Source: Hormiphora californensis
Lineage: Eukaryota; Animalia; Ctenophora
Direction: 5' to 3'
NCBI GenBank assembly: GCA_020137815.1
Contig: CM035352.1
Coordinates: 6,820,001 to 6,884,000, forward strand
DNA length: 64,000 nucleotides
Positions 43,018 through 64,000 of the stretch are shown here, one piece after another (within the stretch, counting starts at the first letter, position 1; each line of letters begins with the position of its first letter). Below the pieces are notes generated by a model. The model had not been told where the DNA came from. It saw only the letters and a program-made list of their open reading frames with translations, and ran no database searches. The translations under genes and the position numbers were made by a program.

Positions 43018-43079
43018 CTTCAACAGTTCAAGTTGATTTGGGTACAGCTGCAGTTAGTGAGTTGTTGAGTGACGCCGAA

Positions 43080-47835: not shown

Positions 47836-47883
47836 GAGAGCCTCTCTCTCGAGGGGCGGGGTGTGTGATAAGAAGGTGGTTAC

Positions 47884-48218
47884 CTGTCGAACATGTCTGT
47901 TTCTGTCACACTTCTTGGTGAATGTCTTCATACACAGCCTACACACCCTCCCATCATCCTCCTCCGTTGATGTTGCTGCAGTGCTGGTGGTGGTTGTAGT
48001 ACCTGGGGGAAGAGGAAGTGTTCAGTAATCGGTATAGGTATCGTGTACGGGAGAGAGAAACATAAGATAAATAGAGATGGGGAGTCAATTATCAACCTAA
48101 TAAATAACAATCAAGACACCAACTACTAAACCTTTTCTGGATGGTGCCGTCTTGCTGGTAGTGGTGTTAAGAAGAGAGTACGCCAGAGAGTTATAGAATT
48201 CATCATCCGGCTGGCCTG
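47884..48218 (-). CDS. Distal multi-exon ZnF unit (exons 48218-48132 and 48002-47884; finger probably completed by VH at about 47547)
   Basis: tactaac branch point plus tttag phase-1 acceptor; phase-1 to phase-1 join; CRLCMKTFTKKCDRNRHVRQ|gtaacc. Confidence 0.55.
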
Positions 48219-48367
48219 CTAAAATGGGTTAGTACACACGTTCTTCACCACACACACACACACAAGAAGAGACAAACATCTTTTGATTCTCAAAATAATA
48301 TAGTAATACTCAGTGAAAAGTGCTTTATATATTAACTAGTTCAGAAGGTTCTCTAGCTATAGCGTTC

Positions 48368-49063
48368 TCAAAACAGCTTCAGCAAGCCATTCAAGTCAGT
48401 AATTACCCCATCTCTAATCCCTTCCTGTTTCCCAGTTCTATCTAACAACACGGGTGTAACACCCTGTAATACACGTGCCCCCTGGTAATCCCTTCTCTCA
48501 CTGTCCCCAACATGCATCTCAATACCATACCGATCCTGGACAAGTGCCAACAATTCTGGTTTAGTAACCCCCTCCAGGTAACTAACCACAACCCCTTCAA
48601 CAGGCAATTCTAACTCTTTCACCAAACTAATTAGTCCCTCGTCGAAATCACTCGTTACCACGACTCCCACGCCACGACGTCTCAGTTCCCGGAGAACAGG
48701 GCCACTTTCTGGGTATGCCTCCCAACAGGAAGCGGTCCGGAACTGCCGGAATAGGTCCTCGTAGATAAACCCAAACTGGTAATCTCGCATGTCAAGGTTG
48801 GCCGATAGAAAACATTCTCTGACTACCCCTCTCCACCAGTCGTGTGTGCCAATAGTGCCATACCCAAAGTTGGGATTAGCTCGTTCTGCATCTTTATAGT
48901 GGAGCCCGAACACCTTGTCTATGTCCTTTGCTATTTCATTACAGTCTGAGGATGTACAGTGCTCCAGGAAAGTAGTTAGAGAGTAACTCGAGCGTAGTGG
49001 TATCCGACGGTCTGGGATACTCTTCCTAGGGTCCCAGTGAAAGTCCAGAGATATGAGCCGCAT
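48368..49063 (-). CDS. HDHD3: HAD-superfamily hydrolase, HDHD3-like, intronless
   Basis: PNFG..DWWRGVV, WEAYP..LRELRRRG..VTSDFD, GVTKP, MHVGDSERRDYQGAR; motif I (DFTGTL..TVGYHYA) is recovered in an adjacent frame, consistent with indel errors. Confidence 0.82.
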   Translation of the reverse strand: MRLISLDFHWDPRKSIPDRRIPLRSSYSLTTFLEHCTSSDCNEIAKDIDKVFGLHYKDAERANPNFGYGTIGTHDWWRGVVRECFLSANLDMRDYQFGFIYEDLFRQFRTASCWEAYPESGPVLRELRRRGVGVVVTSDFDEGLISLVKELELPVEGVVVSYLEGVTKPELLALVQDRYGIEMHVGDSERRDYQGARVLQGVTPVLLDRTGKQEGIRDGVITDLNGLLKLF

Positions 49064-49178
49064 CTTACATTGTACTAAATCAGGGGCTAAACGATACAGT
49101 GGGATAAAGCAAGATATACTGGCAAGTGGCAGATGGAGAATGGAAGAAGACCGATTCTGTTAGCACCGATAAATCCTA

Positions 49179-49621
49179 CTAGCAATATCGATTTCTACCG
49201 ATTGCTTTACCGTCCGCTGCTATCTGCTTCAATTTCTTTAAGTTTTCCTTTGAATTAAAGTACTCCATCGCCTTTTTAGCAATTTCTACCCTTGTACAGG
49301 AATCTTTAAGTGTCGCATACACTTCCGGGTCGACCAGGAATAATTCTATGGCGGCCTTTCTTTGGTAGAACCCGGCAGGTTTAATGTTTCTCCGTGCTAA
49401 GACCGTTATAAGAGTGTTTCCTGTTGATCGCATCTCGCTGAGTACTTCAAAGTATTCCGCCTTCATTTGTTCATCACCGAGGCGCCTTCTTTTGGGTACG
49501 GTGAAGAATTGGGAAATGGCAGCGGAAGGCCATTGCGATGAACCCGTCACCATCCCTGAAGCGTGCAGTCCTTGATGAGGCTGTTGAGGAATCTGCCAAG
49601 AGAAATCAGTCGACCGGCTAC
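49179..49621 (-). CDS. Cassette exon with a CCDC106-like helical domain
   Basis: Strong phase-1 acceptor ccttttatactcttccag|GT in frame; EYFEVLSEMRSTGNTLITVLARRNIKPAGFYQRKAAIELFLVDPE resembles the 59191 cassette and, by recall, the CCDC106 core. Confidence 0.6.
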
Positions 49622-50158
49622 CTGGAAGAGTATAAAAGGTACCGCCTGGAGTGTGACAGCAGTGACGAGTCTCTCTAAGAAGGAACGGCCTCCTGCTAGG
49701 TGTATGGACTGTTTGTTTTACGAACCTTACGTTTTGATTAATTTGAGTTTGCTGTGGCATGATACGCCAATATAATGAGACCTTGTGGTGGTTTGGAGCA
49801 GGCGAAATTAGACCACGGCCGTGCACGGTAAAGCAGCTAATAGAATCTACTGGTGCTAACAGATTCAGTTTTCTTCCATTTTAAGATAATACGGAGGTGC
49901 AATGTGTAAATCAGGAGGGGTAAGACTTTGATAGACATTCAGCGAGAGAAGATAGCATTACCAAGGAGCATTGAAGTCTGACAGCTCTAGAAACGACTGC
50001 ACTTCATTATATAATTGGTTCGAATAAAATACATAGCAAGGCAAGCAGAGTAAAATACATTATGTGTTTCTGATATTATACTGATGGAGAAGAATAAGGC
50101 ATGGCAGAAGAGCTAAAAAGTCTATTTGCAGAGGAGTCAGTTCATCTCTTTCAAAAGT

Positions 50159-50361
50159 TCATTTCTTGTGTGGTTCCATCCTTCCACAGCGGCTAGCATG
50201 ACCCTCAACGTGGGCCTTCTGTTTGAAGGTCCTCCCACACAAGTCACATTTGAACGGCCGCAGTTCGTAGTGGACGTTCAACACATGCCGCTTCAAGTTC
50301 GCCTTAGCACTGAAACCCTTGAAGCGTTTTCCACAGTATACGCAGTCAAAGAACCTTATGC
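50159..50361 (-). CDS. Two-ZnF cassette (CVYC..H..H / CDLC..H..C)
   Basis: cctgtag|GC phase-1 acceptor, own stop. Confidence 0.85.
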
Positions 50362-50661
50362 CTACAGGACGGGTGTCAGAGGCCAATAGAGGTTGGTGTG
50401 TGTATTTGTGGTGGTATATCTTACAAAATTATTGCTAAAGCTGTAGTTTCCCAAAATTAGGTCTTTGATTTCGACGAAGGTTTCTGGCAAGTGACAAAAC
50501 ACGGTTTTTAGTAACTTAAAAATAGTGATACAAGAGATAACAGGGTTGTACTGTCCATGCATTCAAGATATATATATCAAGTCTGAGGCGAAAGAGCACA
50601 CATGCTTTGAACACACACGCACACATACACTTGATCATTGTCTCAGTTTCCCAAAGGATGA

Positions 50662-50876
50662 TTAGTTAGGTAGGGGGTTCCCAGACCTCAGCTTCAGACA
50701 CTTATGATACTTATTGGCGTGTTGTTTGAGATTTCCCTTCTGTGAGAACGTCTTCCCACAGTCCTCACATTTGAAAGGCCGTATGTTCAGGTGTAGAACA
50801 CGATAGTGTCGGTTCACCTGGGACGTACAGCTCCTCCCGATGAAAACCCTCTGACACACCGGACACACTGCACTCT
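50662..50876 (-). CDS. Two-ZnF cassette (CPVC / CEDC)
   Basis: atcccccag|AG phase 1, own stop. Confidence 0.82.
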
Positions 50877-51123
50877 CTGGGGGATATGGGTCGTCCAGTG
50901 CTGGGTGGTGGTGGTTCACATGATGCTAGCCCAGCGGAGCTAGCTTGGTCATAGAACAACCTGTGCATCTTCTTAACATGGACTTTAAGGTGGGCTTTCT
51001 GTGCATATCTCTGCTCGCAAAGCGGGCAACGGAACTTCTTTAGTTTTAGGTGAACGGACTCGAAATGGCGATCTCTGTTGCGTTTTGATTGGAACTGCTT
51101 GTTGCAGAGGGGGCACGTGACGC
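50765..51123 (-). CDS. Two-ZnF cassette (CPLCNKQF / CPLCEQRY); its tail overlaps the next cassette out of frame
   Basis: ccttctag|GC phase 1. Confidence 0.82.
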
Positions 51124-51362
51124 CTAGAAGGAGGGGGAGACGTGTAAAACAGAGAGGAAGAAGAGAGATTGAGATGAGGAAGGATTGAGATGAGAAAGGA
51201 TAGAGATGAGGAAGGATAGAGAGGAAGCTTCCTCTCTCTATCCGGAGAAAATTATTGTCTAGGTAAAAATAATGTCAGATTCTGCAATATAATACGTTTT
51301 GAAACGAAATGTGCTTCACACAATAAATGTTTACACACAAACAATGCTTTTCAATCAACTAA

Positions 51363-51562
51363 CTAAATTTCTAGGAATTCGTTTTGAATTTTGGGACCGT
51401 GTACAGTTTTCATATGTCTCTCAAGGTTCCCCTTCCGATTGAAGGACTTCCCGCACTCACAGCAGGACTGTGTGGTCTCCTGGAAGTGGATGGTCCGGAT
51501 GTGCCGTGTGAGATTTGTTTTCCGAAAGGACCCGTGAAATTCTCGTCCACAAAACTTGCAAA
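51363..51562 (-). CDS. Two-ZnF cassette (CKFC / CCEC)
   Basis: ttattag|TT phase 1, own stop. Confidence 0.8.
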
Positions 51563-51646
51563 CTAATAACACTTTTCGTTATTTTAGGTAAATATTAAAA
51601 TAATAAATGTATAATATAATTATACCGTTATAGATTACCACACATA

Positions 51647-51841
51647 CTAGTCTAGTGAAGCGTGTATCATTTTTAAGTGTCTTTTCAAATTGGACTTCTG
51701 ATTAAAACATTTCCCACAGATCCTACACGTGTACCTATTGTCTCCCATATGAATGGACTTTATGTGTCGGCGGAGGTTGTTTCGCCGTGTAGCGGGGTTG
51801 ACGCCCACGAACACTCTCCCGCAAACGACACACTGAAACAG
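51647..51841 (-). CDS. Two-ZnF cassette (CVVC / CRIC); acceptor phase ambiguous
   Basis: The strong cag acceptors are phase 0 as assembled; a weaker aag upstream is phase 1. Confidence 0.75.
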   Translation of the reverse strand: MFQCVVCGRVFVGVNPATRRNNLRRHIKSIHMGDNRYTCRICGKCFNQKSNLKRHLKMIHASLD

Positions 51842-51922
51842 CTGCAATAAGGGATGGACATGAAACACTTGTACACAAAGGACTTCAAACTCTTTTACCA
51901 AACACACGAAACAACTGGACAG

Positions 51923-52086
51923 TTATTTGGGATGAAGTCTACGCTGGTGGTCAATCAAGGTGACCTTTTGGCCAAAGCGTTTACCACATATTTTACACTC
52001 AAATTGTCGATATCCTAGATGAACGGTCTTTACATGTCGCTCTACATTTCTTATGCACTGAAATTTCCTACCACATAGAGGACAGC
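51923..52086 (-). CDS. Two-ZnF cassette (CPLCGRKF / CKIC)
   Basis: ctcttttcag|GC phase 1, own stop. Confidence 0.87.
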
Positions 52087-52226
52087 CTGAAAAGAGGGGG
52101 AAACAAAGTATGAGGTCAAATGCCTGGCAAACATACACACACATATACACACCACTTAGTGTAAACAATTTATATTTTCGTTTTAGGAGTAAGAATTTTG
52201 AGATGTTTAAATATTTAACTGCCTAG

Positions 52227-52363
52227 TTATTTAATAATCCCTTTCTCCCCGAACCGCATACCACATATTTTACACTCAAATTGTCGATATCCTAGATGAA
52301 CGGTCTTTACATGTCGCTCTACATTTCTTATGCACTGAAATTTCCTACCACACAGAGGACAGC
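52227..52363 (-). pseudogene. Chimeric, truncated ZnF cassette (second finger lacks the His pair)
   Basis: 5' part matches 52086; 3' part (GMRFGEKG and downstream spacer) matches 53982. Confidence 0.75.
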
Positions 52364-52446
52364 CTGAAAAGAGGGGGAAACAAAGTGACGTCAAATGCCT
52401 GGCAAACATACACACACATACACACCACTTAGTGTAAACAATTTAT

Positions 52447-53728
52447 CAGGAAACGACCGAACCGGGTTTTTTCCACCGAACCGAACCGAACCGAATTTGA
52501 AAAACTTTTTTACCGAACCGAACCGAACCGAACCGAATTTCGGTAACCGAACCGAACCGAACCATACAAAACTTTTTCCGTATAAATGTTTCTCTAAAAA
52601 GTCATGGAGAGCACCGATTAAGGTATTGAGAATCATTCTTTGAAATTTTGTTAAAAAATGTTTGAAAAAATTTCAAAGTCAATTTTATCGTAAATTTTCT
52701 ATATATATAATATGTCAATTTTTGCGTACGAATCGTGTTTCGAATCGGCAATGCTATACGGGAATGGTATTGCTAATTAGCAGGATCTAAATTTCCTAAT
52801 TAGATTTGATGGGGGATCACGTATCAGCACAATCCATCTCGAACCCGCTAATTACCAACAGCACTCCCGTTTAGCATTGTCGATTAGAAACACGATTCGT
52901 ATACCATAATTTACTTAAAATATTTTTCACAAAAAAAATTTCACAAAATTTCAGGTAATGATTCTCAATACCTTGATCGATGCTCTCCATGAATTTTTAG
53001 AGAAACATTTAATTTTGTGAAAAAAACTTTGTAAAATATGTATTTCAAAGTCAATTTCGGGAAAAAAATTCTATGTCAATTTTGCCGTACGAATCGTGTT
53101 GCGAATCGGTGATGCTATGCGGCAGTGCTCTCGCTAATTAGCAGGATTTATTGAAACATGAATCGTTTCCCCTAAACTTCCTAATTAGATTTGATGGGGG
53201 ATCACGTATCAGCATAATCCATCTCGGACCCACTAATTAGCAACATCACTCCCGCTTAGCAATACCGATTCGAAACACGATTCGTACGCAAAAATTGACA
53301 TAGAAAATTTTCCATAAAATTGACTTTGAAATATTTTCCAAACTTTTTTACAAAATTTCAGAGAATGATTCTTAACACCTTGATCGGTGCTCTCCATGAA
53401 TTTTTTGAAAAAAAAAGTTTCTGAATTTGTTGACCCTCTCATGAGGACACGATTCGACGGGAAGTCAGGTATCAAATCAATCCATATCGAACCCGCTAAC
53501 TAGCGAAATCATTTCCACATAGCACCACCGATTCGAAATAGGGTTAATACGGCGAAATTGACATTGAAATCCATACAATTTTGCATGAAAAAGCCCGATT
53601 TCTGGGCATTTTTGACCAAAAAATTCGGTGGTTCGGCCAAAATTTCCTACCGAACCGAACCGAACCGCCCAAAAAACACCGAATTTCCGAACCGAACCGA
53701 ACCGAACCGAATATTCGGTCGCTTCCTG
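52447..53728. mobile_element. Non-autonomous hAT element, about 1.28 kb
   Basis: TIR caggaa.cgaccgaa / ttcggtcgcttcctg; 8-bp TSD CAATTTAT on both sides; subterminal (CCGAA)n; empty site visible in the duplicated spacer at about 52166. Confidence 0.9.
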
Positions 53729-53785
53729 CAATTTATATTTTCGTTTTAGGAGTAAGAATTTTGAGATGTTTAAATATTTAACTGC

Positions 53786-53982
53786 CTAGTTATTTACTAA
53801 GGGCACATTATCCATAGTCAAATTGTGTTTTCGGCGCTTATGAATCTTCAAAGTCCCTTTCTCCCCGAACCGCATACCACACACATCACACTCAAATTCC
53901 TTCAACCCAAGATGAACTGTAGTGACGTGTCTTTTAACCTTGCTGGGACATGTGAATTGCTTGTGACAAACGGGACAGCGGT
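53786..53982 (-). CDS. Two-ZnF cassette (CPVCHKQF / CDVC); not in the ORF track
   Basis: cttcttttcag|AC phase 1; DRCPVC..RHVTTVHLGLKEFECDVCGMRFGEKGTLKIHKRRKH..*. Confidence 0.87.
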
Positions 53983-54053
53983 CTGAAAAGAAGCATTCAA
54001 ATACATTAGTTTAAAAAAAGCAAAAAGTTTTTTAGTAGGCTAATTAAGCTGAT

Positions 54054-54229
54054 TTATAAGCCCCAGGTCATGGCATGAATCCGTTTCTTGTGATTTTTTA
54101 AAGTCCTTTTCTCCCCAAATCTCATCCCACAGACATTACACTCATGCTCCTTTAATCCTAGGTGTACAGTCTTCACATGTCTCTCAACGTTACCCACTGA
54201 CTGAAATTGTCTTTGACACAACGGGCAAG
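54054..54229 (-). CDS. Two-ZnF cassette (CPLCQRQF / CNVC)
   Basis: atttttcag|CT phase 1, own stop. Confidence 0.87.
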
Positions 54230-54352
54230 CTGAAAAATATAATATAAACACATGTACACAAACAGCGTGATTTAGAATTGCTTGGTTTCCAAAATATATT
54301 CAAACTAATCCTTAGCATTTGATACTTTTTTAAAGCGTTTCAGATAACTCAG

Positions 54353-54580
54353 CTACTCCTTAACATCATAGACATCCTCAAGAATCGAATTAACCATGCT
54401 CGGAATGTCAGGTAGAGTATTGGGATGTTTTCGGGACATGTGGCCCTTCAGGGACGGACCCTTGACCGAAACGAGCCCCACAAACATCACAAACATATCT
54501 CTTTGATCTTAGGTGGACAGTAAGGAAGTGTCTCTTGACATTTTTGAAGCCGTGATACGATCTATCACAGATGGGACACT
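54353..54580 (-). CDS. Two-ZnF cassette (CPIC / CDVC), one indel
   Basis: tttttttcag|AG phase 1; GHMSRKH is recovered in an adjacent frame. Confidence 0.8.
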
Positions 54581-54691
54581 CTGAAAAAAAAAGAGGAAAT
54601 TTAAACTTGCTGCACATTACACACACACACACATACACTCGGAACATCAGCGAAAGTAAAAGCTCAAAAATTTCAAGATTTATAATATTAT

Positions 54692-54920
54692 CTAATTTCC
54701 ACCACACGTGGTCTTGTGTTGTTTCAAATTGTTTGATTGCTGGTATGCCTTTCCCACACAAGTTGCAAATGTGAGGTCGAATATTGCAGTGTACACCCTT
54801 GTAAGTGTCTATTCACCAAATGATTTCTGTTTTTCCCAAAAAACACTTTTCCGCAGACTTTGCAAGAGACGCCCGGTGGCCGAGAAGAAGTTTCGCCGTG
54901 TATAACAACAGCATGAGACA
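54692..54920 (-). CDS. Two-ZnF cassette (CKVC / CNLC..H..C), two indels
   Basis: tcctcacag|TG phase 1. Confidence 0.75.
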
Positions 54921-54960
54921 CTGTGAGGATATAAAAAGATGTGAAATGAGGGGCGGAGTT

Positions 54961-55169
54961 CTAAGAATTGACATTATTGTATTTCAACCGACATTTGATT
55001 TCATGCTTGTTTTTACTGCTAGTGCGTGTAAATTGTCGTTTGCAGAAAGAGCATGAAGCCTCGTAATAGCCCGGAGAATGAGAGGAACGAATGTGCCTCA
55101 TGAGCGTGTACTTGCGACTTTGACCAGTAAAAAACTTGCCACACCATTCACACTGGGTATCGGACTGAT
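54961..55169 (-). CDS. Two-ZnF cassette (CEWC / CSFC..HEIKC); not in the ORF track
   Basis: tattctctcag|AT phase 1, own stop. Confidence 0.85.
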
Positions 55170-55253
55170 CTGAGAGAATATAAAAAGTAGAGAAAGGAGC
55201 AGTTTAGAGAAAGAGAGGTCAGGGAGTTTTTATAAAATGCTATGAGTTTTTAT

Positions 55254-55447
55254 CTATTTTCGCATGCTACATGTGCGCTCATGTCTTCGCTTTGAGTTCA
55301 TGCGGGTAAATTGTCGTTGGCAAAATGAGCACACTCCCTCAATGTAACCACAGTGGACAGTTTTGATGTGCCGTGCGAGGGTTGAAGCACGGCTTGGTCC
55401 ATAATAGGTCTTCCCACATGAACCACATGACATTCCACCACCATCCC
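55254..55447 (-). CDS. Two-ZnF cassette (CGSC / CSFC..HERTC)
   Basis: ccaccccag|GG phase 1. Confidence 0.85.
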
Positions 55448-55752
55448 CTGGGGTGGAGGGGAATTGTTTTCCACTTAGGTCAGACAAAAAAAATGGAGAT
55501 TTATTAACGGTGGTATAAAGATAAGTTGGATAAACATTGCAAACACGTTTTACAGCACTCTGTAGAACTCATAATTTTACTTTGTCTGGGAACAGTTTTT
55601 TAACGACCTCTCACATTGACAGATAGATATATAATAAAGTGTCTGATATCAAACCCGCAGCAATATAACAACATGAACTACCATGCTTCTTTTGACCCTC
55701 ATACATACACTGATACACACATCTTTACTTGTTTCTCAACAGACTATTTGGG

Positions 55753-55937
55753 TTAGGACTTGCATGTCTTCTCATGTTTTAGTCTTGAACTATTACGTGA
55801 GAAGCCTCGATCACAGTAGGAACAAAATCCCTCTCTGACACCAAGGTGAGCACATTTTATGTGTCGAGTAAGGGATGTTGTGCAGTTGGGACCGTTATAA
55901 GCCCTGCCACAATGAGGACAAAATATACGTGCCGACC
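55753..55937 (-). CDS. Two-ZnF cassette (CPHC / CSYC..HEKTC)
   Basis: ttctccacag|GG phase 1. Confidence 0.86.
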
Positions 55938-56075
55938 CTGTGGAGAACACAAAATACTGCAGTGGGGGTTGCCATGGTTACTACACTAAAATACTGCAGT
56001 AGGGGGAGGGGGTGACCTCCCACAATACCAGTGGTGGTTGCCATGGCAACCCACATTATACCAGTGTTACTAAAT

Positions 56076-56268
56076 TCAGTTTGTATGTTTGCAATGATTT
56101 TAAGTGTCGTTTAAGGGAGTCATGACGAGTGAATCGCTTGTAGCACCAGGGGCAGGGGTACGCCTCCTTTAAGTGGAAGGATTTGTAATGTCCGGTGAAG
56201 GTTAGCCAAACTTCCTAGGCCTGTGTAGACTTTACCACACGCCTCACACACGGCTTGATGGAGCGCCT
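56076..56268 (-). CDS. Two-ZnF cassette (CEAC / CPWC), indels
   Basis: catgtag|AG phase 1; second finger lies in an adjacent frame. Confidence 0.72.
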
Positions 56269-56354
56269 CTACATGTAGGGAAATAACTGCTAGAATTTTA
56301 GGGAAAAAAAAGAGGTCCAAATCCGTTCATGCAGACAGCGATATTTTATTGTCC

Positions 56355-56545
56355 CTAAAAAGGTAGCACGCATTTGGAAAGGTGTATTTTCATAGAGTCT
56401 TGTCGCGTGAACTCCTTGCCACACTGGGGACACCGGTAAAAGTGATTTAGATGCGCTGAACGGTAATGTCGACGTAGGTTCTTAGATCCAAACATTCCCG
56501 TGTAAGTGTTACCACACACATCACAGTGCACTGGCTCGAAGTTGT
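56355..56545 (-). CDS. Two-ZnF cassette (CDVC / CPQC..HLSKC)
   Basis: ttctcctag|AC phase 1. Confidence 0.86.
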
Positions 56546-56640
56546 CTAGGAGAATTAGAAAGTAAAGACAAGCCGCACACACAAACGACAATCGTACAAA
56601 GTACACACACAGACAAACTGATGGAGAAATATATATCTGT

Positions 56641-56849
56641 TTATCTATTAGTGGGACACACTCTAGAGTGTCGTTTCAGCGAGTCGATCCTGGAGAATAG
56701 TTTTCTACACTCATTGCACTCATACTCGCGAAGCTTCAGATGCACTGTTCGGTGGTGAATTTTGTAGTGGTTACGGCGTTGGTTGCCATAGAACTTGCGG
56801 AAGCAGAGCAGACACTCAACAAAACCTTCCCCTTCATACGACAACACAT
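56641..56849 (-). CDS. Two-ZnF cassette (CLLC / CNEC..HSRVC)
   Basis: ttgttccacag|AT phase 1. Confidence 0.86.
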
Positions 56850-57072
56850 CTGTGGAACAAATAGAGAGGGAGATATACAACAGAGGGAGATATAACGAGA
56901 TGAGAGAGATCTGTCTGGCGGCACCGACCCGATCTGAGCGTACTGTGGCACAATCAAAACGGGATCTGGCGATGCCAGACAGTGAGAGATGAAAGTAGTG
57001 CTTTTAAATAGTGCTAAATAATAAACTACACTACGTGCTAAATATATCTTGGTAATTATGTAGTACCTCGAG

Positions 57073-57281
57073 TTACTGTGGGGCGCTAAAATTGTTTACG
57101 TTTGCTTTGCATCTCTGGTAGTGTCTAAGGCACACATTTCGGCGGGCAAACCACTTAAGGCACGCGATACACTGATGCTTTTTAATTTTCAAGTGAACTT
57201 CCATGTAATGAATTCGGAAATGTTTCTTCGCTTGTGCCCCCAGGAATTCCTTTACACACACCGGACAAACCACTGGCTCTT
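57073..57281 (-). CDS. Two-ZnF cassette (CPVC / CIAC..HYQRC)
   Basis: acatttcag|AA phase 1. Confidence 0.86.
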
Positions 57282-57604
57282 CTGAAATGTATGGGAAACA
57301 TGGAGAAACACAAGTTGGAAGAGGATTCTTTAGAATGGCGGGGAGAGAAAGGTGTTTGGAATACACAGGAATTTGAGGGAGGGATTTGTGTTGGATAGTT
57401 CTGTAGTTTTGCACAAAGTAAAAATAGTAAGTTTTCAGCAGTAAAAGTATGAGGAAAATATAACACACCAGTACATTAAATTTACGGTGATAGTAACACT
57501 GAAATCTAGAGACTACAGCTACACATTTGTCCATGAGATAATAAAGACTACCCATTTTTCCATGATCGAGAGAGAGACTACAGACAACACATTTGTCAAG
57601 TCCA

Positions 57605-57816
57605 TTATGGGTCAATTTGAATGGTACGATTGGTTGGGTTTCCATGGATTTTTTTCACATGTTTCCGGAAATTTGAGGAGTCACTATAACGTTTGCCACA
57701 ATGCTCACAGAGAAAGGGCCGCTCTCCGGTGTGGGTCCGGAAGTGGTTTTCAAGGTGTCGCTTACGGGAAAATATCTTGGCACACACGGGGCAGGGAAAT
57801 TTCCGACGGCCAATGT
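57605..57816 (-). CDS. Two-ZnF cassette with a canonical TGERPF linker
   Basis: ttcttccag|AC phase 1; [35 protein letters not shown]. Confidence 0.88.
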
Positions 57817-58034
57817 CTGGAAGAATTGTCAGTCAGGGACGTGTTCGGGGATTTCGAACAGGGCTATAATTATATTCTAAACTTTGCATCTATCTTTATA
57901 GTTTTAAACCGATAACAGCTACAATGACAAAGAAATATTAATTTACCCTCGAATAAAAAGAATCACTTGGGAGATAAAATTAAAATTTCGCACACACATA
58001 GACAGCACACAGGTACGCACAAAGAAGATAAAGT

Positions 58035-58258
58035 TCAAATTTTGAAATTTGGAGAGCACGCCAGAGTGTGACGCTTTTGGTTGTCAATCCGTGCAAACAT
58101 TTTCCTGCACTTTGGACAAGAGTACTTTTTGATTTTCAGGTGAACCGTTCGAATGTGGAGTCGACGATGGGATATTCGGTGCGGTCCAAAAAACTGCCGA
58201 CCACAGTACTCGCAATAGACAAACAGTTCCCCGTCTCCACTCTGTAATTGTTCTGGTT
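58035..58258 (-). CDS. Two-ZnF cassette (CEYC / CPKC..HTLAC)
   Basis: tagtttcag|AA phase 1. Confidence 0.82.
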
Positions 58259-58269
58259 CTGAAACTAGA

Positions 58270-58457
58270 TCACTTTCGTTTAGAGCACGATTTTGACTGA
58301 TGTCTGTTCTTAGTGCCAGGTTGCGTAAAAGCTTTCCCACAGTACTCGCAATGGAAAGATTTGATTTTTAAATGTACAGTTTTGATGTGCATTTTAAGAT
58401 GAGAATTCCTGCTCACGCCGACGAATCTCTTTTTGCAGTACATACACTGAGCATCAT
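58270..58457 (-). CDS. Two-ZnF cassette (CMYC / CEYC..HQSKSC)
   Basis: atttctttcag|AT phase 1. Confidence 0.87.
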
Positions 58458-58694
58458 CTGAAAGAAATATAGAACTACTCAGCAATCAAATTCAGAGGGA
58501 CAAAGACATGCATTTGTTGGAGTATTCCCCACTTATTGGGTATTTAGTCCCTTTAACAATAATGATCTAGCTACAATCCTATATTTCTGAGCATGCCGGG
58601 TGATTGTTTCTTTTTAAAAGTTCTAAACAAGTTTTCCGGTGAAAATTCAACCCCGTTATATCGTGGTATAACGGTTGTGCAGGTGAAAATGAGT

Positions 58695-58918
58695 TCAAGG
58701 AAGGATAAAATCCACATTGCATATTTTGAGGTGCCTAGTCTTGCTGCTTAGATGACTGAACTTTCGGCCACATTTCTCGCAAATGAAAGGCTGTAGTCTC
58801 AGGTGAACCGCCTGGTAGTGTCTCCGATAATCGGAGGCGCTGAGAAACTGCCGCGAACAAATGGAACAACAAGTCCGGCCGGTTGCTCTGCCGGTTCCAC
58901 GTTTACCACCACCTCCTC
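58695..58918 (-). CDS. Two-ZnF cassette (CSIC / CEKC..HLKIC)
   Basis: ccctctcccag|GA phase 1. Confidence 0.85.
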
Positions 58919-59190
58919 CTGGGAGAGGGCGGGGATTTTTTAAACACACGTGACACGGGGGACAAAGGAGAAAATAACGGTTTAAAAGTAGGAAATATCA
59001 AATGACTAATACATTTAGATGATTATAGATCTGCGGAAATTTCCGTCGAAAAAAAGGTTCTACCCTGGTCCCCCTTTATTAAATTCGGTAAAGATTATAC
59101 AGTGTTTCAGCAACGATTATGCAGTGGATCAAAAGTGATTCTGCGGGGACTATAAAGTGTATTGGTAAGATAATAACGCAATTGCTGAGT

Positions 59191-59567
59191 TTACATGAGC
59201 TCCCCGTTGGTCCGCGCCACTCTGACTCTCTGGGCTGTAGCTGGGGTGGCCAGAATCCTCTCAGCCTCCTTCTTCACCTTCTGAACAGTCCACCCGGTAC
59301 GGCTGCAGAGTAGTTGATGAAGGGTTGTAGGGTCCGCCAGGGCTAGCTCCGCAATGGACTTCCCGTCGTAGAAGGTTCTAACTGGAATGCCTGTAGCAGT
59401 AAGGGCGTCCGCAATACAACCGCCCGTCTGCTGCCTGTAAGCCATCACTTTGTTGTAACGCACCAGAGCTCTCCCCGGGATGGTATTTCTTCCAAAACTG
59501 GGTGTAGTAGCACGAGTCATATCTACATCTGGACAGAATACTCCATTTACAGCTCCCATCTGCCGGC
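59191..59567 (-). CDS. Cassette exon with a CCDC106-like helical domain
   Basis: cttctctcaaatcag|GC phase 1 in frame; LVRYNKVM..CIADAL..GIPVRTF..SIAELALADP resembles, by recall, CCDC106 (LFRYKKIL..SMSRAF..RNT..PIAELLIVAP). Confidence 0.65.
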
Positions 59568-59922
59568 CTGATTTGAGAGAAGACCAAATTGCAACGTTAT
59601 CATAGTCTCCCTGCCTAATTCGCTACTCTGGACTGGAATGGGGTTCTAATCATTTTTCGTAGAATCCGTTGCATGATCCTTGGCAAAACACTGTATAATG
59701 CCTTTCGAATTTTGAAATTGAGGACCCGGCTAGTACCAAAAACACCGTCAGAATAAGTAATAGAAAACATATTTTACTGGCAATAGTGTCCGTACATAAC
59801 AAGTGTAGAAGAGAAAAACTGCACACTCTTCTTCTCAAAGATTCTCAAAAAACAGACACCTTATGTGATATAAAATATCCATCCACTCAGACTCAGACCC
59901 CTAGTGAGCAGTAATGCGATAT

Positions 59923-60110
59923 TCAAGCTAATCTGCAGCGAGCCTGGTGCATTTTGCGGTTGCTATCCTGTGCAAATAACTTCCCACAGACACGGCATTG
60001 GAATTCCTTAATTTTAAGATGCACTCCCTTGTAGTGTCGGCGGTAATGGTACAGACCCTGTGTCCCATTAAAGACTCGATCGCAAATTTTACACTTTAGC
60101 ACCGTAGGCC
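59923..60110 (-). CDS. Two-ZnF cassette (CKIC / CRVC..HQARC); not in the ORF track
   Basis: caacctctag|GG phase 1, own stop. Confidence 0.86.
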
Positions 60111-60177
60111 CTAGAGGTTGGGGACAACATAATGCACTTTAGATTGGGAAGGAAATAATTTGGAGCTGCTATCTATT

Positions 60178-60389
60178 CTATTGGTCCAGGGCGATAAAAC
60201 CCCTCGCTTTACAAGAATTTTGCTCGTGACGTTGACGATGGGTGGAGGTACCGAAGCCCTTTAAGCAGTATCTACAGAGGTTTTGCCTACGTCGTTGGTG
60301 GACTGTCTGTATGTGCCGTTTAACACTGGACACAGCGGTAAAGAATTTCCCACAAAACTCACAGGACAAGTTCGTTGGAGTTAGTGCGC
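60178..60389 (-). CDS. Two-ZnF cassette (CEFC / CRYC..HEQNSC)
   Basis: atttttccag|GC phase 1. Confidence 0.87.
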
Positions 60390-60413
60390 CTGGAAAAATG
60401 AATTTACATAACT

Positions 60414-60583
60414 CTAACGTCGGCATGAAAACGCATGCTTTTTTAGATCCGACTTTTGATAAAACCTACGACCACAAATCGGACAAGGGAAGTTTTTGAT
60501 TCCGAGGTGCACGACTTTGTAATGCCTTTTCACTTGATACGATCCTTGGTAAACTTTCTGGCACTCAGGGCAAGAATAGCTGC
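60414..60583 (-). CDS. Two-ZnF cassette (CPEC / CPIC..HAFSC)
   Basis: gtttttcag|GC phase 1. Confidence 0.87.
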
Positions 60584-60618
60584 CTGAAAAACACACAGGA
60601 GGGATCGGGGAGGGAGAT

Positions 60619-60842
60619 TTAGGAGGGAGGTGGTAGACGGGGTTGCAACAAGAGATCCTTAGATTTAGCAGATTTAGCAATCAGACAGTTCTTGGACTCG
60701 TGTCTTGATAGACTCGGCATGGTGCCAAAAGTTTTGCTGCAGTATTTGCATGCGTAGGGTCGCATTTGAAGATGGACGGCTATAACGTGCTGTCTAAGGT
60801 ATCTCACTTGGGTGAATTCCTTGCCACAGAACGCACACTCTT
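60619..60842 (-). CDS. Two-ZnF cassette (CAFC / CKYC..HESKNC)
   Basis: gtactttcag|AA phase 1. Confidence 0.87.
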
Positions 60843-60894
60843 CTGAAAGTACACACACGTCACACACACGTAAAACACAATAATATAACATATG

Positions 60895-61073
60895 TTAGGA
60901 AGGGGGATGTCGAGATGATATGTGTTCTTTTAGATGCGCCTTCCGCTTAAACGAAAAACCACATTCGATACACTTGAATTTTCGAATCTGGAGGTGCACA
61001 TTTTGCTCATGTCGCCGTCGGTTGGACGTACTTGAGAGGCCCAAAAATTCCATGCCACAAAAACTACACTTGC
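60895..61073 (-). CDS. Two-ZnF cassette (CSFC / CIEC)
   Basis: ctctttttag|GC phase 1. Confidence 0.87.
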
Positions 61074-61118
61074 CTAAAAAGAGAGAAGAAAAAGTCAACC
61101 CGATGGTGGTATTTAGAT

Positions 61119-61312
61119 TTATTTGTGAAGGGCAATCATGTGCCTTCGAAGGTTGAAAGATCGAGTAAAGGGCCTACTGCAGATAGGGCAATAAATAACT
61201 TTCTCTCGTGGTCTTGGACACACAGCCGCACTGTGAATATACAAGTTGTGCCGCTTTGCTGCTTGGGCGGTTGAAAATTCCCTCTCACATATATCACACC
61301 ACCTGTCACCGT
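61119..61312 (-). CDS. Two-ZnF cassette (CDIC / CPIC)
   Basis: cccacttag|AC phase 1 (alternative phase-1 acceptor at 61333). Confidence 0.83.
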
Positions 61313-61379
61313 CTAAGTGGGAGTGGTGGTGTTCTAGTTTACAGATCATTCATTATACAATCAACACAAATCAGGGGAC

Positions 61380-61621
61380 TTAATCAAGAGGAGGAGGGGG
61401 AGGAGGCAAGTCACTGGTATTAGTATTTCGCGTGGTTCGCATGGTGCCAATATTGTGTTGTGTAACTAAGTGTTCCTTGAGGTGATAATTTCTCTTAAAC
61501 GCTGAACCACACACTTCACACTTAAAATTTCTAATCTGTAAGTGGACGTTGTGTTCGTGACGGCGTCTCGATTGGATTCCGCCCCGGCCCAGAAACTCAC
61601 GGCCACAATATCGACAACACC
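61380..61621 (-). CDS. Two-ZnF cassette (CRYC / CEVC)
   Basis: ctttctatctag|GG phase 1. Confidence 0.87.
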
Positions 61622-61770
61622 CTAGATAGAAAGAAGAGAGATTCACTATCTGCTGAACTTAGAAAACAGAGGGGTGTATCTTCGTCCTAACCCTATAAAC
61701 ACACACACACACACACACAAACGATAATATAAACACTCACAAGATAGATTAATGTTGGTGATGTTTTTGA

Positions 61771-61961
61771 CTAATTGTCTAAAAGTACGTTATGCTGAGA
61801 TTGTAAGTGTCTTCGAAGGCTACATCGCCTTGAAAAGCTTTTCCCGGTTTTGCAAATTGGACAGAATATTTGGCGGACTGGAGCGTGAACTGATCCCATG
61901 TGAAGTCTTGCCGCTCCAACCGTGCTAAATACTTTTCCACAAACCGTACACGACTTGCTAC
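61771..61961 (-). CDS. Two-ZnF cassette (CTVC / CPIC)
   Basis: tgtgtgcag|GT phase 1. Confidence 0.86.
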
Positions 61962-62036
61962 CTGCACACATACAACACTCGTGTCACAACAATAAAGCTA
62001 ACTCGGGATTCTGTCCAAAATTCTCAAATCTCAGCC

Positions 62037-62233
62037 TCAAGACCGGGAAGTCTCAAGACCATGAAGATTTCTAACGTGAACTCGGAAATTATCCAGCCTG
62101 TTCAGAATTTTTCCGCAAAGAGGACACTCGTATCGTTTTGGGGTCTGGTGGATGTTGGTGAGATGACGTTTCGCGGCTCCCGGGCAGCTGAACCGCTTGC
62201 TGCAGATTTGGCACATCACTTTTTCTATGTAAC
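62037..62233 (-). CDS. Two-ZnF cassette (CQIC / CPLC)
   Basis: cttttactag|GT phase 1. Confidence 0.86.
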
Positions 62234-62348
62234 CTAGTAAAAGATGTGTGCAAAAAATAAATAAAAACTAAATTAAGATGGGAATGTACACTCACTTTCT
62301 AGCGAACAAATTAAATTGTTTATATTTTTTCAAGGAAAACTTTTTTCG

Positions 62349-62537
62349 CTAAAGATCATAGTTTCTATGGTGGGCACGTCTGTAATGGTCTCTCAGAGTT
62401 TCTTTACGAATGAATGTTTTCCGACAAATGGAACAGACAAAGTTTCTCTCTCTCAAATGAACCTCCTTGATATGTCGATTGATTTTCCATTTGCTGGCAT
62501 TTTGGTAATCGCAGGAGGGGCATCCCTTCAACCGGAC
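62349..62537 (-). CDS. Two-ZnF cassette (CPSC / CSIC); phase 1 requires removing one base (possible GGG homopolymer error)
   Basis: Fingers are clear; the acceptor frame is ambiguous as assembled. Confidence 0.75.
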   Translation of the reverse strand, partial: VRLKGCPSCDYQNASKWKINRHIKEVHLRERNFVCSICRKTFIRKETLRDHYRRAHHRNYDL

Positions 62538-62585
62538 CTGGCACTGTGATCACCACCCAACACTGCACACACAAACATACGGGTG

Positions 62586-62827
62586 TTAGTCAACCATAAG
62601 AACACCGGGAGGCAGTGGTTTGGCTGAACCGTTATGTACACTTCGCACGTGTCTCGCTAGGTTCTCATTTCTACTAAAAGTTTTCTCGCATATGTTACAC
62701 TTGAATTGGCGTAGTTTTAGGTGGACTTCAGAGAGATGGCGACGAAGGGCTGCTTTGGGGACGGAAGAGCCCCCGGCTCCCCGGAACAGTGCCGTGCAAC
62801 CCGGGTAGGGGCACCGCTGTACTGATT
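62586..62827 (-). CDS. Two-ZnF cassette (CPYPGC / CNIC); not in the ORF track
   Basis: ttttcttccag|AA phase 1, own stop. Confidence 0.86.
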
Positions 62828-62998
62828 CTGGAAGAAAAATTAAAAACGATAAATGTATTGTGGGACGAATTTAAGAAGTGTATAGAATTACATTATAGAC
62901 TAGTTACACACGTACAGACACTGTGCTATTCACTCTCTCTCTCTCGCTCATTAATTATATCTCGCAAGATTACATATGTCACCATTTAATTAAATTAA

Positions 62999-63207
62999 TC
63001 ACGGGAGGGGTGCTAGGCTGTGTGCAATAAATTGATGTCGTGTAAGAGTCTCTTTTCGTTTGAAAGAACAATGACAAAGATCACACGTAAAACGGCGCTG
63101 TTCAGTGTGCACTTCACGGATGTGTCTCTTCAAAATCCACCTTCGCCGGCTCACATTTCCCTTGGTATTCGCAAGGAAGGGGCAGTAGGGACATGGAATA
63201 CTATCAG
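62999..63207 (-). CDS. Two-ZnF cassette (CPYC / CDLC)
   Basis: catatttcag|CT phase 1. Confidence 0.86.
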
Positions 63208-63281
63208 CTGAAATATGGGACCAAGATATATATAACACTTTGTATGTGGACGCTCTAAATATTTAATATGTCACACTAAAT

Positions 63282-63448
63282 TTATTCGCTGTGGATATTT
63301 TGCATGTGTCTCTTTAGCACGTCTTTCCTAGCAAAAGCCTTTTGACAAAGTCTACAAATGTTCGATCGTTGATTAAGATGGCGGACCCGGATGTGACGGC
63401 GGAGGCCCGCTGAAGTACTGTAAACATTGTTACATATCTCACACACTA
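63282..63448 (-). CDS. Two-ZnF cassette (CEIC / CRLC); not in the ORF track
   Basis: acatttcag|TA phase 1; the stop lies within AATAAA. Confidence 0.86.
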
Positions 63449-63462
63449 CTGAAATGTTTATA

Positions 63463-63641
63463 TCATGAGGGGGTAGGAGGAGGGTGCTTCACACGCACGT
63501 GCCTATTCCGAACATCACTACGAGAAAATGATTTAGGACAATGCGGGCAGCAGTGGGACCGGACTTCGCTGTGTACAGTTTTTATATGCCGTCTCAGATC
63601 GCCAATTCGCTTCAGCACCTTGTTACACAGGGGGCACGGCC
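63463..63641 (-). CDS. Two-ZnF cassette (CPLC / CPHC)
   Basis: ttattctcgcag|GG phase 1. Confidence 0.87.
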
Positions 63642-63728
63642 CTGCGAGAATAATACGGGGGATCACTGAGTCTATGAGTTTTAGAAGTTGAGAGATCAGT
63701 TTAGAGGTGAAGTTGAGATCTACCCAGA

Positions 63729-63907
63729 TTAGAGTTGGACCTTGTGGACCACTTTAGCGTGTCTCGTTACACTGGATTTTCGTGTAAATTCCTTCTCGCA
63801 AATATGACATATAAATATATTCGATCGCTCGTGAACATCTTTTATGTGGTAGCTTAATCGGTGCTGGGACGGATATCGCTTGTGGCAGTGCGGGCATTCA
63901 AAGTCGC
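63729..63907 (-). CDS. Two-ZnF cassette (CPHC / CHIC); not in the ORF track
   Basis: ctcctttttcag|GC phase 1, own stop. Confidence 0.87.
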
Positions 63908-64000
63908 CTGAAAAAGGAGGAGGGGGAGAAATTTACCAAAAGTGTGCGGGGGACAATCTATGTTTGACAGGAGAAGTTGTGTGTGTTCCTACCTCCTGCG

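Follow-up and report, generated by a model that had tools for sequence, protein, structure and literature searches.

The array of zinc-finger units found in the 64,000-nucleotide stretch of Hormiphora californensis DNA analyzed here (hereafter, the window) very probably belongs to one gene, in which a shared N-terminal part is combined with a single terminal exon out of a large set of alternatives. There seem to be about 45 of these last exons, most of them coding for a different two-finger, presumably DNA-binding, tip. The gene would be a single protein-coding unit of about 23 kb on the minus strand, from 70887 to about 47500 in coordinates extended beyond the window. Its mRNA receives the spliced leader of the species at an acceptor that precedes the ATG by about 19 nt, and continues with four constant exons (E1-E4), which encode a conserved N-terminal helical domain of about 50 residues and then a long low-complexity region. 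From E4, which ends in phase 2, transcripts may proceed either to one of three CCDC106-like terminal exons or to a 59-nt adapter exon that resets the frame to phase 1. The single adapter donor would then pair with one acceptor out of about 40 located downstream, each opening a terminal exon with its own stop; these exons encode about 33 intact C2H2/C2HC finger pairs, whose recognition helices diverge, as well as two helical modules of the CCDC106-like type. The product would be a protein family with a common N-terminal half and a differing C-terminal, presumably DNA-binding, module. The four constant exons and the adapter lie 2.7-6.9 kb beyond the window (extended coordinates):

70887-70712, minus: constant exon E1
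70617-70489, minus: constant exon E2
70310-69931, minus: constant exon E3
69647-69373, minus: constant exon E4, donor phase 2
acceptors 68942, 68383 and 67871, minus: three CCDC106-like terminal exons between E4 and the adapter, 1 lead nt each
66774-66716, minus: 59-nt adapter exon, phase 2 to phase 1

A six-frame scan of the window for the pattern C-x2-4-C-x10-14-H-x3-5-H/C revealed about 60 minus-strand fingers, all between 50186 and 63896, and none on that strand in the rest of the window. The plus strand gave a few stray matches. A preliminary description of this DNA had claimed about 37 co-oriented two-finger units on the minus strand; we found 36 such C2H2 units in the window, together with an end unit of one finger and two units of the CCDC106-like kind. 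The array had also been described as reaching the window edge. It does continue past it, with two more zinc-finger units (acceptors 64185 and 64506) in 40 kb of added sequence, but it stops about 500 nt beyond. Our catalogue of zinc-finger units runs from 64506 to 50159 and holds 38 entries, 36 of them wholly inside the window, with lengths of 107-359 nt (median 197 nt). The units are as follows (window coordinates; the phase is that of the acceptor):

63989-64000, minus: two-finger cassette, 3' end only in window; acceptor 64185 beyond the edge, phase 1; stop 63989
63729-63907, minus: two-finger terminal cassette, phase 1; pyrimidine fraction 1.0, CAG acceptor, own stop
63463-63641, minus: two-finger cassette, phase 1; orthologue of lobate cassette in P0010 (53% identity, 72.8 bits vs 50.1 for the next best)
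63282-63448, minus: two-finger cassette, phase 1
62999-63207, minus: two-finger cassette, phase 1; orthologue of Bolinopsis isoform X17 (59% identity, 80 bits vs 44)
62586-62827, minus: two-finger cassette, phase 1
62349-62537, minus: two-finger unit, off-phase; all usable acceptors phase 0, open in phase 0 only
62037-62233, minus: two-finger cassette, phase 1
61771-61961, minus: two-finger cassette, phase 1
61380-61621, minus: two-finger cassette, phase 1
61119-61312, minus: two-finger cassette, phase 1
60895-61073, minus: two-finger cassette, phase 1
60619-60842, minus: two-finger cassette, phase 1
60414-60583, minus: two-finger cassette, phase 1
60178-60389, minus: two-finger cassette, phase 1; orthologue of Bolinopsis isoform X13 (51% identity, 63.9 bits vs 49.7)
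59923-60110, minus: two-finger cassette, phase 1
59191-59567, minus: CCDC106-like helical non-finger terminal cassette, phase 1; acceptor 59567, 2 lead nt; PF15794 E 0.002-0.003, below cut-off
58695-58918, minus: two-finger cassette, phase 1
58270-58457, minus: two-finger cassette, phase 1
58035-58252, minus: two-finger cassette, phase 1
57605-57816, minus: two-finger cassette with classical TGERPF linker, phase 1
57073-57281, minus: two-finger cassette, phase 1
56641-56849, minus: two-finger cassette, phase 1
56355-56617, minus: two-finger cassette, phase 1
55753-55937, minus: two-finger cassette, phase 1
55254-55447, minus: two-finger cassette, phase 1
54961-55169, minus: two-finger cassette, phase 1
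54724-54920, minus: cassette with finger 1 intact and finger 2 degenerate, phase 1
54408-54580, minus: cassette with finger 2 broken by a frame change, phase 1; finger remainder in other frame, 54353-54496
54054-54229, minus: two-finger cassette, phase 1
53786-53982, minus: two-finger cassette, phase 1
52227-52363, minus: truncated recent duplicate of the 51923-52086 cassette, phase 1; matches the RNA-contig 30-mer with 1 mismatch
51923-52086, minus: two-finger cassette with direct RNA support (contig X3 record 9), phase 1
51647-51841, minus: two-finger unit, off-phase; open in phase 0 only
51363-51562, minus: two-finger cassette, phase 1; weak acceptor, pyrimidine fraction 0.35
50765-51123, minus: two-finger cassette with long tail, phase 1; orthologue of Bolinopsis isoform X16 (66% identity over 64 aa, 102 bits vs 63.5)
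50662-50876, minus: two-finger cassette, phase 1
50159-50361, minus: two-finger cassette, phase 1
49179-49621, minus: CCDC106-like terminal cassette, phase 1; best acceptor 49621
47885-48002, minus: last unit, single finger resembling finger 1 of Bolinopsis isoform X6; phase-1 acceptor; then CAG|GTAAC and a tandem repeat

Every unit ends in a private stop codon, as had been claimed. A methionine precedes the first finger in only 2 of 36 units, in agreement with the reported lack of a conserved ATG, and the units are therefore not translatable alone. The framework Phe does not vary between units, nor do the zinc ligands, and the helix positions show 1.8-3.2 bits of entropy, which bears out the earlier reading that recognition helices differ from unit to unit. 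The idea that each unit is a two-finger module holds for most of them, but about five are degenerate or truncated, including 54920, 54580, 52363 and the end unit 48002 (no second finger was found downstream of the latter), and two CCDC106-like units lie inside the array. The CCDC106-like unit 59191-59567 was aligned with the four other CCDC106-like modules of the locus. AATAAA/ATTAAA hexamers are not enriched on the coding strand of the array (14, compared with 16.4 in shuffles).

The choice of acceptors relied solely on YAG and polypyrimidine content and was blind to phase. The best acceptor was in phase 1, with 2 nt before the finger frame, in 35 of the 38 units (binomial chance of at least 35/38 at one third = 5.2e-14), a recount that upholds the near-uniform phase initially given as about 35 of 37. 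The pooled acceptor profile is canonical, with C30/T8 at -3, an invariant AG and a pyrimidine tract. The two exceptions already singled out, 62537 and 51841, were recovered. These intact-looking units are both in phase 0, incompatible with the donor of the adapter (phase 1) and with that of E4 (phase 2).

Transcript evidence came from marine metatranscriptome contigs (runs X1-X4, three studies), 95-99% like the reference and not from the sequenced animal. They contain the minus-strand GT..AG joints 70712/70617, 70489/70310, 69931/69647 and 69373/66774, each in two to three runs; the last one, joining E4 to the adapter, is present in contigs of two studies. Contig X3 record 9 passes from the end of E4 through the complete adapter into another 74 nt, and the 30 nt beside the joint are exactly those of window positions 52056-52085, starting at the predicted acceptor. 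Running from E4 through the adapter to the 52086 cassette, this contig skips 14.6 kb. The phase-1 donor predicted past 64000 was located on the adapter and not, as proposed, on the main constant exon. A common donor serving many acceptors had been expected, and the RNA joint from the adapter to 52086 is of this kind, but only this cassette, or its near-identical duplicate 52363, has a direct RNA joint in Hormiphora. RNA depth was zero in runs X1-X4 for the three CCDC106-like exons between E4 and the adapter. The loose 5' end of contig X1 is identical to the published H. californensis spliced leader.

A BTB or other domain had been suggested for the constant region, and no BTB was found there. 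Instead, the constant part contains the helical domain of about 50 residues, found in ctenophore proteins only, through which the products may oligomerize. There are about eight paralogous loci, at least two of them with phase-1 cassette arrays.

A search with E3 gave full-length proteins from other ctenophores. Bolinopsis microptera LOC134813369 (RefSeq models XP_063677140-XP_063677176) has at least 34 isoforms, up to X34, with a common constant part and adapter followed by one differing finger pair or non-finger tail; the adapter peptide matches that of Hormiphora at 12 of 19 residues. Each isoform carries exactly one cassette, as predicted for the mRNAs. The same layout is present in the independent transcript-derived proteins P0002, P0013 and P0045, and Mnemiopsis leidyi KAL5264987.1 has a CCDC106-like module at its end, after the adapter. 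Both the Bolinopsis and Mnemiopsis orthologues resemble the Hormiphora gene in their N-terminal domain, IKEE, LMSS and NPLSML motifs and adapter peptide, and in having one alternative finger pair or CCDC106-like tail each. They have automatic annotation only, being named 'uncharacterized', 'sal-like', 'myoneurin-like' or 'ZNF236-like', and our literature search found no paper on them or on the Hormiphora locus. The expectation that gene predictors would miss such an array is borne out by the Mnemiopsis GenBank model, which is one protein, but not by the RNA-supported NCBI annotation of Bolinopsis. Four cassettes of the window have unambiguous 1:1 orthologues.

It is unlikely that only a minority of cassettes is used, the others being decaying duplicates kept open by chance or recent duplication. 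Units 54920, 54580, 52363 and 48002 are visibly damaged, 62537 and 51841 are off-phase, and RNA supports one Hormiphora unit only. Nevertheless, 36 of the 38 units have a reading frame that stays open for 44-118 codons after the phase-1 acceptor, while a neutral stretch of 60 codons would have about a 6% chance of lacking a stop, and 32 second fingers retain intact zinc ligands. Moreover, the four units with orthologues have kept 51-66% identity with single Bolinopsis isoforms in spite of a deep split within the ctenophores, and the Bolinopsis gene has its many annotated isoforms. We infer that the remaining cassettes are used in Hormiphora as well, and their C-terminal modules probably bind DNA.

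Less probable still is that the cassettes are transcribed separately and trans-spliced to a transcript of the constant part and adapter, as happens in Drosophila for mod(mdg4) and, in part, for lola. The contigs fit cis and trans joining alike, most mRNAs of this organism undergo spliced-leader trans-splicing, with the leader at the gene's own 5' end, and there is precedent in mod(mdg4), a passage of PMC13490949 describing its isoforms as made exclusively by trans-splicing. However, all Hormiphora cassettes are co-linear on one strand downstream of the donor, so that cis joining is enough and trans-splicing is not needed. In mod(mdg4), unlike here, some cassettes are on the opposite strand. 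Besides, the stop of one unit and the acceptor of the following one are a median of 87 nt apart, which leaves no space for private promoters, and no repeated intron motif was found upstream of the cassettes, beyond the acceptor itself. Cis joining on one pre-mRNA is therefore what we favor.

That the units are independent small genes, leader-capped at their acceptors and translated singly, is highly improbable. Leader trans-splicing is common in this genome and a good acceptor stands at the start of every unit, but leader acceptors would have no use for a uniform phase, nearly all units lack a methionine before the first finger, and in the RNA contig and all orthologous proteins the cassette is attached to the constant part, which contradicts this reading for the 52086 cassette. 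Tandem same-strand finger units are superficially like KRAB/poly-ZNF genes, but successive internal exons of one long poly-zinc-finger protein are contradicted by the in-frame stop of every unit, by the RNA contig, which skips about 30 units, and by the orthologous proteins of 437-487 aa with a single cassette each.

Drosophila lola is similar to the Hormiphora locus in joining a constant N-terminal part to one alternative last exon, mostly finger pairs, with a mix of C2H2 and C2HC fingers and one cassette per mRNA. It has 20 last exons, 17 with fingers (PMC10551640), compared with about twice the cassettes in roughly one fourth of the space in Hormiphora, where they are packed too tightly to allow the private, non-overlapping 3' UTRs that lola is described as having (PMC10551640). 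The Hormiphora locus, from Ctenophora rather than Arthropoda, further differs in its constant part without BTB, its phase-setting adapter exon, its second, CCDC106-like, cassette class and its leader-trans-spliced 5' end. The TTK-group BTB-ZF genes fruitless, broad and tramtrack also combine a common N-terminus with alternative finger pairs at the C-terminus, but with 2-5 alternatives against about 45. In mod(mdg4), BTB is combined with FLYWCH modules. A passage of PMC13490949 gives it more than 30 isoforms, with common exons and one alternative 3' exon carrying a differing C-terminal zinc-binding module, an arrangement like that of Hormiphora. The TTK-type BTB domain is described, in a part of PMC11426971, as arthropod-specific. 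Given the ctenophore host and the constant region without BTB, the natural reading is that this lola-like device of a fixed front half and alternative finger ends arose separately from arthropod lola and mod(mdg4). The clustered protocadherins and UGT1A likewise have large tandem series of alternative exons, one of which is joined to constant exons in each mRNA, although there the variable exons are the 5' ones and have individual promoters, whereas those of Hormiphora are 3' terminal.

The locus was examined over the window and 40 kb past its end, and genome-wide counts refer to the 110.7-Mb assembly of 45 contigs. Coordinates past 64000 continue the window numbering (a position in the adjoining stretch, L002, is the coordinate minus 64000), and each cassette, that is, an alternative terminal exon with its own acceptor and stop, is named by the coordinate of its acceptor. 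In a six-frame pattern scan, all minus-strand C2H2 fingers of the window fell within 50186-63896. The array had been described as running to the window edge; it crosses that edge with two more finger units and ends just after them. We catalogued 38 finger units on the minus strand, from 64506 to 50159, and in addition five units with acceptor and stop that belong to a second, non-finger helical class, here called CCDC106-like modules. All cassettes are co-linear.

Finger units remain open for 44-118 codons up to their own stop, with a median unit length of 197 nt. Three cassettes compared with Pfam scored 37.8-44.8 bits for PF00096, against a cut-off of 25.2, and qualify as C2H2 fingers, for which we required the pattern C-x2-C-x12-H-x3-5-H/C, a conserved aromatic residue and a Pfam score above the cut-off. 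No variation is seen in the framework Phe or in the zinc ligands (32 second fingers compared), while the helix positions vary by 1.8-3.2 bits. Damaged or truncated units are 54920, 54580, 52363 and the last one, 48002.

The acceptor of each unit was chosen by pyrimidine content and YAG alone, without regard to phase, and the pooled acceptor profile of the cassettes is canonical. The best acceptor is in phase 1, with two nucleotides before the finger frame, in 35 of the 38 units (binomial p = 5e-14), which confirms the phase lock noted in the preliminary description. The same two exceptions were also recovered, 62537 and 51841: the units 62349-62537 and 51647-51841 (minus strand) encode two intact fingers each and are open in phase 0 only. 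A single poly-zinc-finger gene was rejected, given the stop present in each unit. Independent mini-genes were rejected as well, since a methionine precedes the first finger in only two units and the finger units are therefore not translatable alone.

Constant exons, designated E1 to E4 and predicted from the sequence, lie past the window edge, and a 59-nt exon, here called the adapter, stands between E4 and the cassettes. CCDC106-like modules are found both between E4 and the adapter and inside the array:

Predicted constant exons, adapter and CCDC106-like modules
Up to 70712, minus strand: E1, predicted, with the ATG at 70868; donor phase 1
70617-70489, minus strand: E2, predicted; donor phase 1
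70310-69931, minus strand: E3, predicted; donor phase 0
69647-69373, minus strand: E4, predicted; donor phase 2
Acceptors 68942, 68383 and 67871, minus strand: three CCDC106-like open frames between E4 and the adapter, one lead nucleotide each
66774-66716 (L002:2716-2774), minus strand: adapter, 59-nt exon, restoring phase 1 in the frame imposed by E4
59567-59191, minus strand: CCDC106-like unit inside the array, phase 1 like the finger cassettes
49621-49179, minus strand: CCDC106-like unit inside the array, phase 1 like the finger cassettes

The phase-2 donor of E4 does not match the phase-1 cassettes, and the single lead nucleotide at 68942, 68383 and 67871 is what direct joining from the E4 donor needs. 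The phase of units 62537 and 51841 is that of the E3 donor (69931), not that of the adapter or E4 donors; that they might take the phase-0 donor of E3 is pure speculation. In its unused frame, the adapter reads KPRRL...EFIELE, resembling the start of the CCDC106-like modules (KRRRL...EEY...); the remnant of one such cassette may have been recycled here.

Our RNA evidence for Hormiphora comes from marine metatranscriptomes only (four runs, X1-X4, from three studies), whose contigs are 95-99% alike to the reference and were aligned to L002:901-6900. The four predicted borders, E1|E2, E2|E3, E3|E4 and E4|adapter, all showed GT..AG joints on the minus strand, with two or three runs supporting each. 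A 181-nt contig, record 9 of run X3, consists of the end of E4, the whole adapter and 74 further nucleotides that match nothing in the aligned stretch. The 30 nt shown next to the joint are identical, with zero mismatches, to window positions 52056-52085, so that the transcript goes on at the predicted acceptor of cassette 52086, past 14.6 kb and about 30 cassettes. The duplicate cassette 52363 differs from this stretch by one base and is an alternative, less exact match. Of the junctions from one phase-1 donor to each acceptor that the preliminary description predicted, the one from the adapter to 52086 was seen, and the use of one cassette per mRNA off a common donor is thus documented in this species for a single cassette. 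No further adapter-to-cassette transcript was found in JGI metagenome contigs with an exact 24-mer of the adapter 3' end or with a wobble-degenerate adapter pattern; a search with E4 only gave a single match, a genomic-looking fragment of a 97%-identical relative. One contig of run X2, 186 nt long and 96% alike, maps on the minus strand to L002:1962-2147 (65962-66147), within the intron that separates the adapter from the first finger cassette. It may come from a retained intron, an exon not yet recognised, library DNA or a repeat located elsewhere.

A HMMER search with E3 against 1.84 billion representatives returned five proteins, one of them a transcript-derived protein of 472 aa composed of the N-terminal domain, a low-complexity region, the adapter peptide (12 of 19 residues in agreement with Hormiphora) and one finger pair. 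A search with this protein led to Mnemiopsis proteins and to isoforms of LOC134813369 of Bolinopsis microptera, whose numbers reach X34 in the cluster listing, indicating at least 34 orthologous isoforms. The LOC134813369 isoforms are identical as far as the adapter peptide and then carry one different tail each, and every orthologous protein examined has a single cassette after that peptide. We obtained 26 distinct tails, mostly finger pairs, with one CCDC106-like and one that is neither. Four of the tails have an unambiguous single orthologue in the window:

Orthologous tails and cassettes
Bolinopsis isoform X16 tail and cassette 51123: 66% identity
Bolinopsis isoform X17 tail and cassette 63207: 59% identity
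Database protein P0010 tail and cassette 63641: 53% identity
Bolinopsis isoform X13 tail and cassette 60389: 51% identity

These four pairs indicate that individual cassettes already existed when pleurobrachiid and lobate ctenophores separated, and that they have been retained. The predicted protein P0023 (474 aa, from an ENA contig) combines the N-terminal domain of the family with Pfam domains of the SIX and homeobox types; this may reflect a wrong merger in the gene model, or a member of the family whose tail is a homeodomain.

The simplest mechanism would be cis alternative splicing of one long pre-mRNA, in which about 40 acceptors would compete for one phase-1 donor and the chosen terminal exon would supply the stop codon. 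Upstream of the acceptors, 6-mer enrichment revealed only splice-site and pyrimidine words. Private 3' UTRs are described for lola (PMC10551640). A similar arrangement is unlikely here, because AATAAA/ATTAAA hexamers on the coding strand of the array are not above chance (14 vs 16.4 expected) and the distance from a stop to the next acceptor has a median of 87 nt. The 3' UTRs of the isoforms may instead run through downstream cassettes.

The 5' end of the transcript is joined to a spliced leader. In a contig of run X1, the junction falls at an acceptor about 19 nt upstream of the ATG (70887-70889), and the loose 26 nt at the 5' end of the contig lie within the published Hormiphora leader, which places the transcript in the leader-trans-spliced class. 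For this leader of H. californensis, 718 genomic copies were reported (PMC8527503); we counted 636 copies of the 26-mer in the Hormiphora genome and none in the 104 kb around the gene. Six genomic leader copies that we read end in GAG and run straight into unrelated sequence, with GT next in only one, and some copies sit as close head-to-head pairs.

The preliminary description had placed beyond 64000 constant exons with a phase-1 donor and a BTB or other domain; the exons and the phase-1 donor of the adapter were found there, and a BTB was not. The constant exons gave no BTB match in Pfam at E <= 1, nor did six full-length homologues at E <= 0.1, and BTB membership was rejected on these grounds. 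Nor was any other Pfam domain detected in the constant exons or in the constant part of the full-length homologues. An N-terminal block of about 50 residues is almost invariant in ten homologues, which also have the short motifs IKEE, LMSS and NPLSML in common. AlphaFold predicts the block as two helices, in a full-length model of database protein P0018 that is poor overall (pLDDT 48.5). A PDB sequence search gave no hits, and residues 1-70 gave no usable match in a protein-atlas feature search. In word-index searches, the N-terminal 70 residues retrieved 12 proteins, those with a named source from Bolinopsis or Mnemiopsis and the others unnamed environmental sequences, and a full-length homologue likewise retrieved named matches from Bolinopsis and Mnemiopsis only.

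Within the Hormiphora genome, the N-terminal domain occurs at nine places, corresponding to about eight paralogues. The paralogue at C10:5255900-5280060 (minus strand; L018-L020) is followed, downstream of 5.28 Mb, by an array with some 19 two-finger units, in which 17 of 21 best acceptors are in phase 1 (p = 1e-5); it adds a second lola-like locus to the genome. At C10:2216101-2246200 (L027-L029), the orthologue of Bolinopsis LOC134821797 carries three finger cassettes in phase 1; the Bolinopsis gene likewise has isoforms differing in their finger tails. A further paralogue, at C10:2128879-2158900 (L030-L032), has about 14 scattered fingers over 22 kb in mixed phases and may be an ordinary multi-exon finger gene.

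The swapping of a last, DNA-binding exon, by which one gene yields dozens of transcription factors, has been regarded as peculiar to arthropods and linked to BTB proteins of the TTK type. Like lola, mod(mdg4), fru and broad, the ctenophore locus offers a large choice of 3' terminal exons that differ in their DNA-binding module and bring their own stop, and it joins one of them per mature mRNA to a common donor; unlike those genes, its constant exons have no N-terminal BTB/POZ. Cassettes of lola are joined partly by trans-splicing. Those of mod(mdg4) are reported to be joined always in this way (PMC13490949). Homology of the constant region to arthropod proteins was not found with HMMER (E3 against the 1.84 billion representatives) or in the word-index searches with the homologue and its N-terminal 70 residues. 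In function, the locus is a system of the lola/mod(mdg4) type. It is not a member of that class: it has no BTB, it belongs to a ctenophore, and the searches turned up no relative among arthropod proteins.

With moderate confidence, we regard it as an independent ctenophore invention of the lola strategy on a lineage-specific scaffold. In such a system, a small N-terminal helical domain would take the place of the BTB, a phase-1 rule, served here by the 59-nt adapter, would admit any duplicated finger-pair exon, and several paralogous loci would coexist in one genome; no animal would be known to have a larger array of this kind than the present one, with some 45 alternative DNA-binding termini in 23 kb. 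Because its packing is too tight for private 3' UTRs and leaders are trans-spliced onto free acceptors in this organism, cassette choice may depend on a mode of selection or of 3'-end formation for which the fly genes give no precedent.

A full-text literature search, of gapped coverage, retrieved no paper tying ctenophores to such a locus or mentioning its RefSeq/GenBank identifiers. The phenomenon is already implicit in the NCBI annotation of Bolinopsis, which lists isoforms to X34, and for this reason the earlier expectation that gene predictors would miss the locus was only partly right. A larger system, on an unrelated scaffold and at several loci, shows the solution to be convergent and offers a second, independent case of how one donor picks among about 40 acceptors. 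It also means that counts of ctenophore transcription factors by gene number are underestimates, and that annotation, single-cell and gene-family work in ctenophores needs isoform-aware models at such loci. The roughly 40 natural two-finger modules on a common chassis are suited to the study of DNA specificity.

All five Hormiphora CCDC106-like modules can be aligned together with the Mnemiopsis tail. Three Hormiphora modules scored 16.3-18.4 bits for PF15794 (CCDC106) and the Mnemiopsis tail scored 26.4 bits (E 7e-6), in every case below the gathering cut-off of 30.2 bits. A confident AF2 model of the 68383 module has six helices (pLDDT 89). Foldseek against the PDB gave nothing significant with this model. 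In an exhaustive structural alignment, the top match was to the DNA-binding domain of LEAFY (101 of 103 residues at rmsd 3.2 A, Z 7.7); the helix-turn-helix domains of KorB, SopB, VirB and ParB came next (Z 3.4-4.5), all below the safe level for helical folds. The predicted structure is suggestive of a helical DNA-binding module.

Within the array, 51923-53785 includes a recent tandem duplication of cassettes, 52086 and 52363, whose acceptors and first finger are nearly identical. A repeated open frame (53785-53480 and 52222 onward) borders a 1.4-kb stretch without cassettes, which looks like a repeat or transposon insertion. Between the last cassettes, at 48368-49086 (minus strand), lies an open frame of 238 codons resembling HAD hydrolases (PF00702, 30.6 bits). 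Its acceptor at 49086 is compatible with phase 1 and stands 22 nt ahead of an ATG, and two readings fit the frame: a further alternative terminal exon, or a nested gene that receives the leader by trans-splicing. Behind the last, single-finger unit, where the second finger would be expected, 47423-47900 is taken up by a proline-rich tandem repeat that gives PTYPL...FAHLPP in each of the three frames.

The neighbouring genes are named here from their open frames only. Upstream (L002:7166-10654 and beyond), the locus is bounded by a listerin-like gene (RING E3), past which lie open frames that resemble a reverse transcriptase and a 7TM receptor, with a G-protein beta-like gene between them. Downstream of the array there is a histone H2B-like open frame (42646-43053, minus strand).
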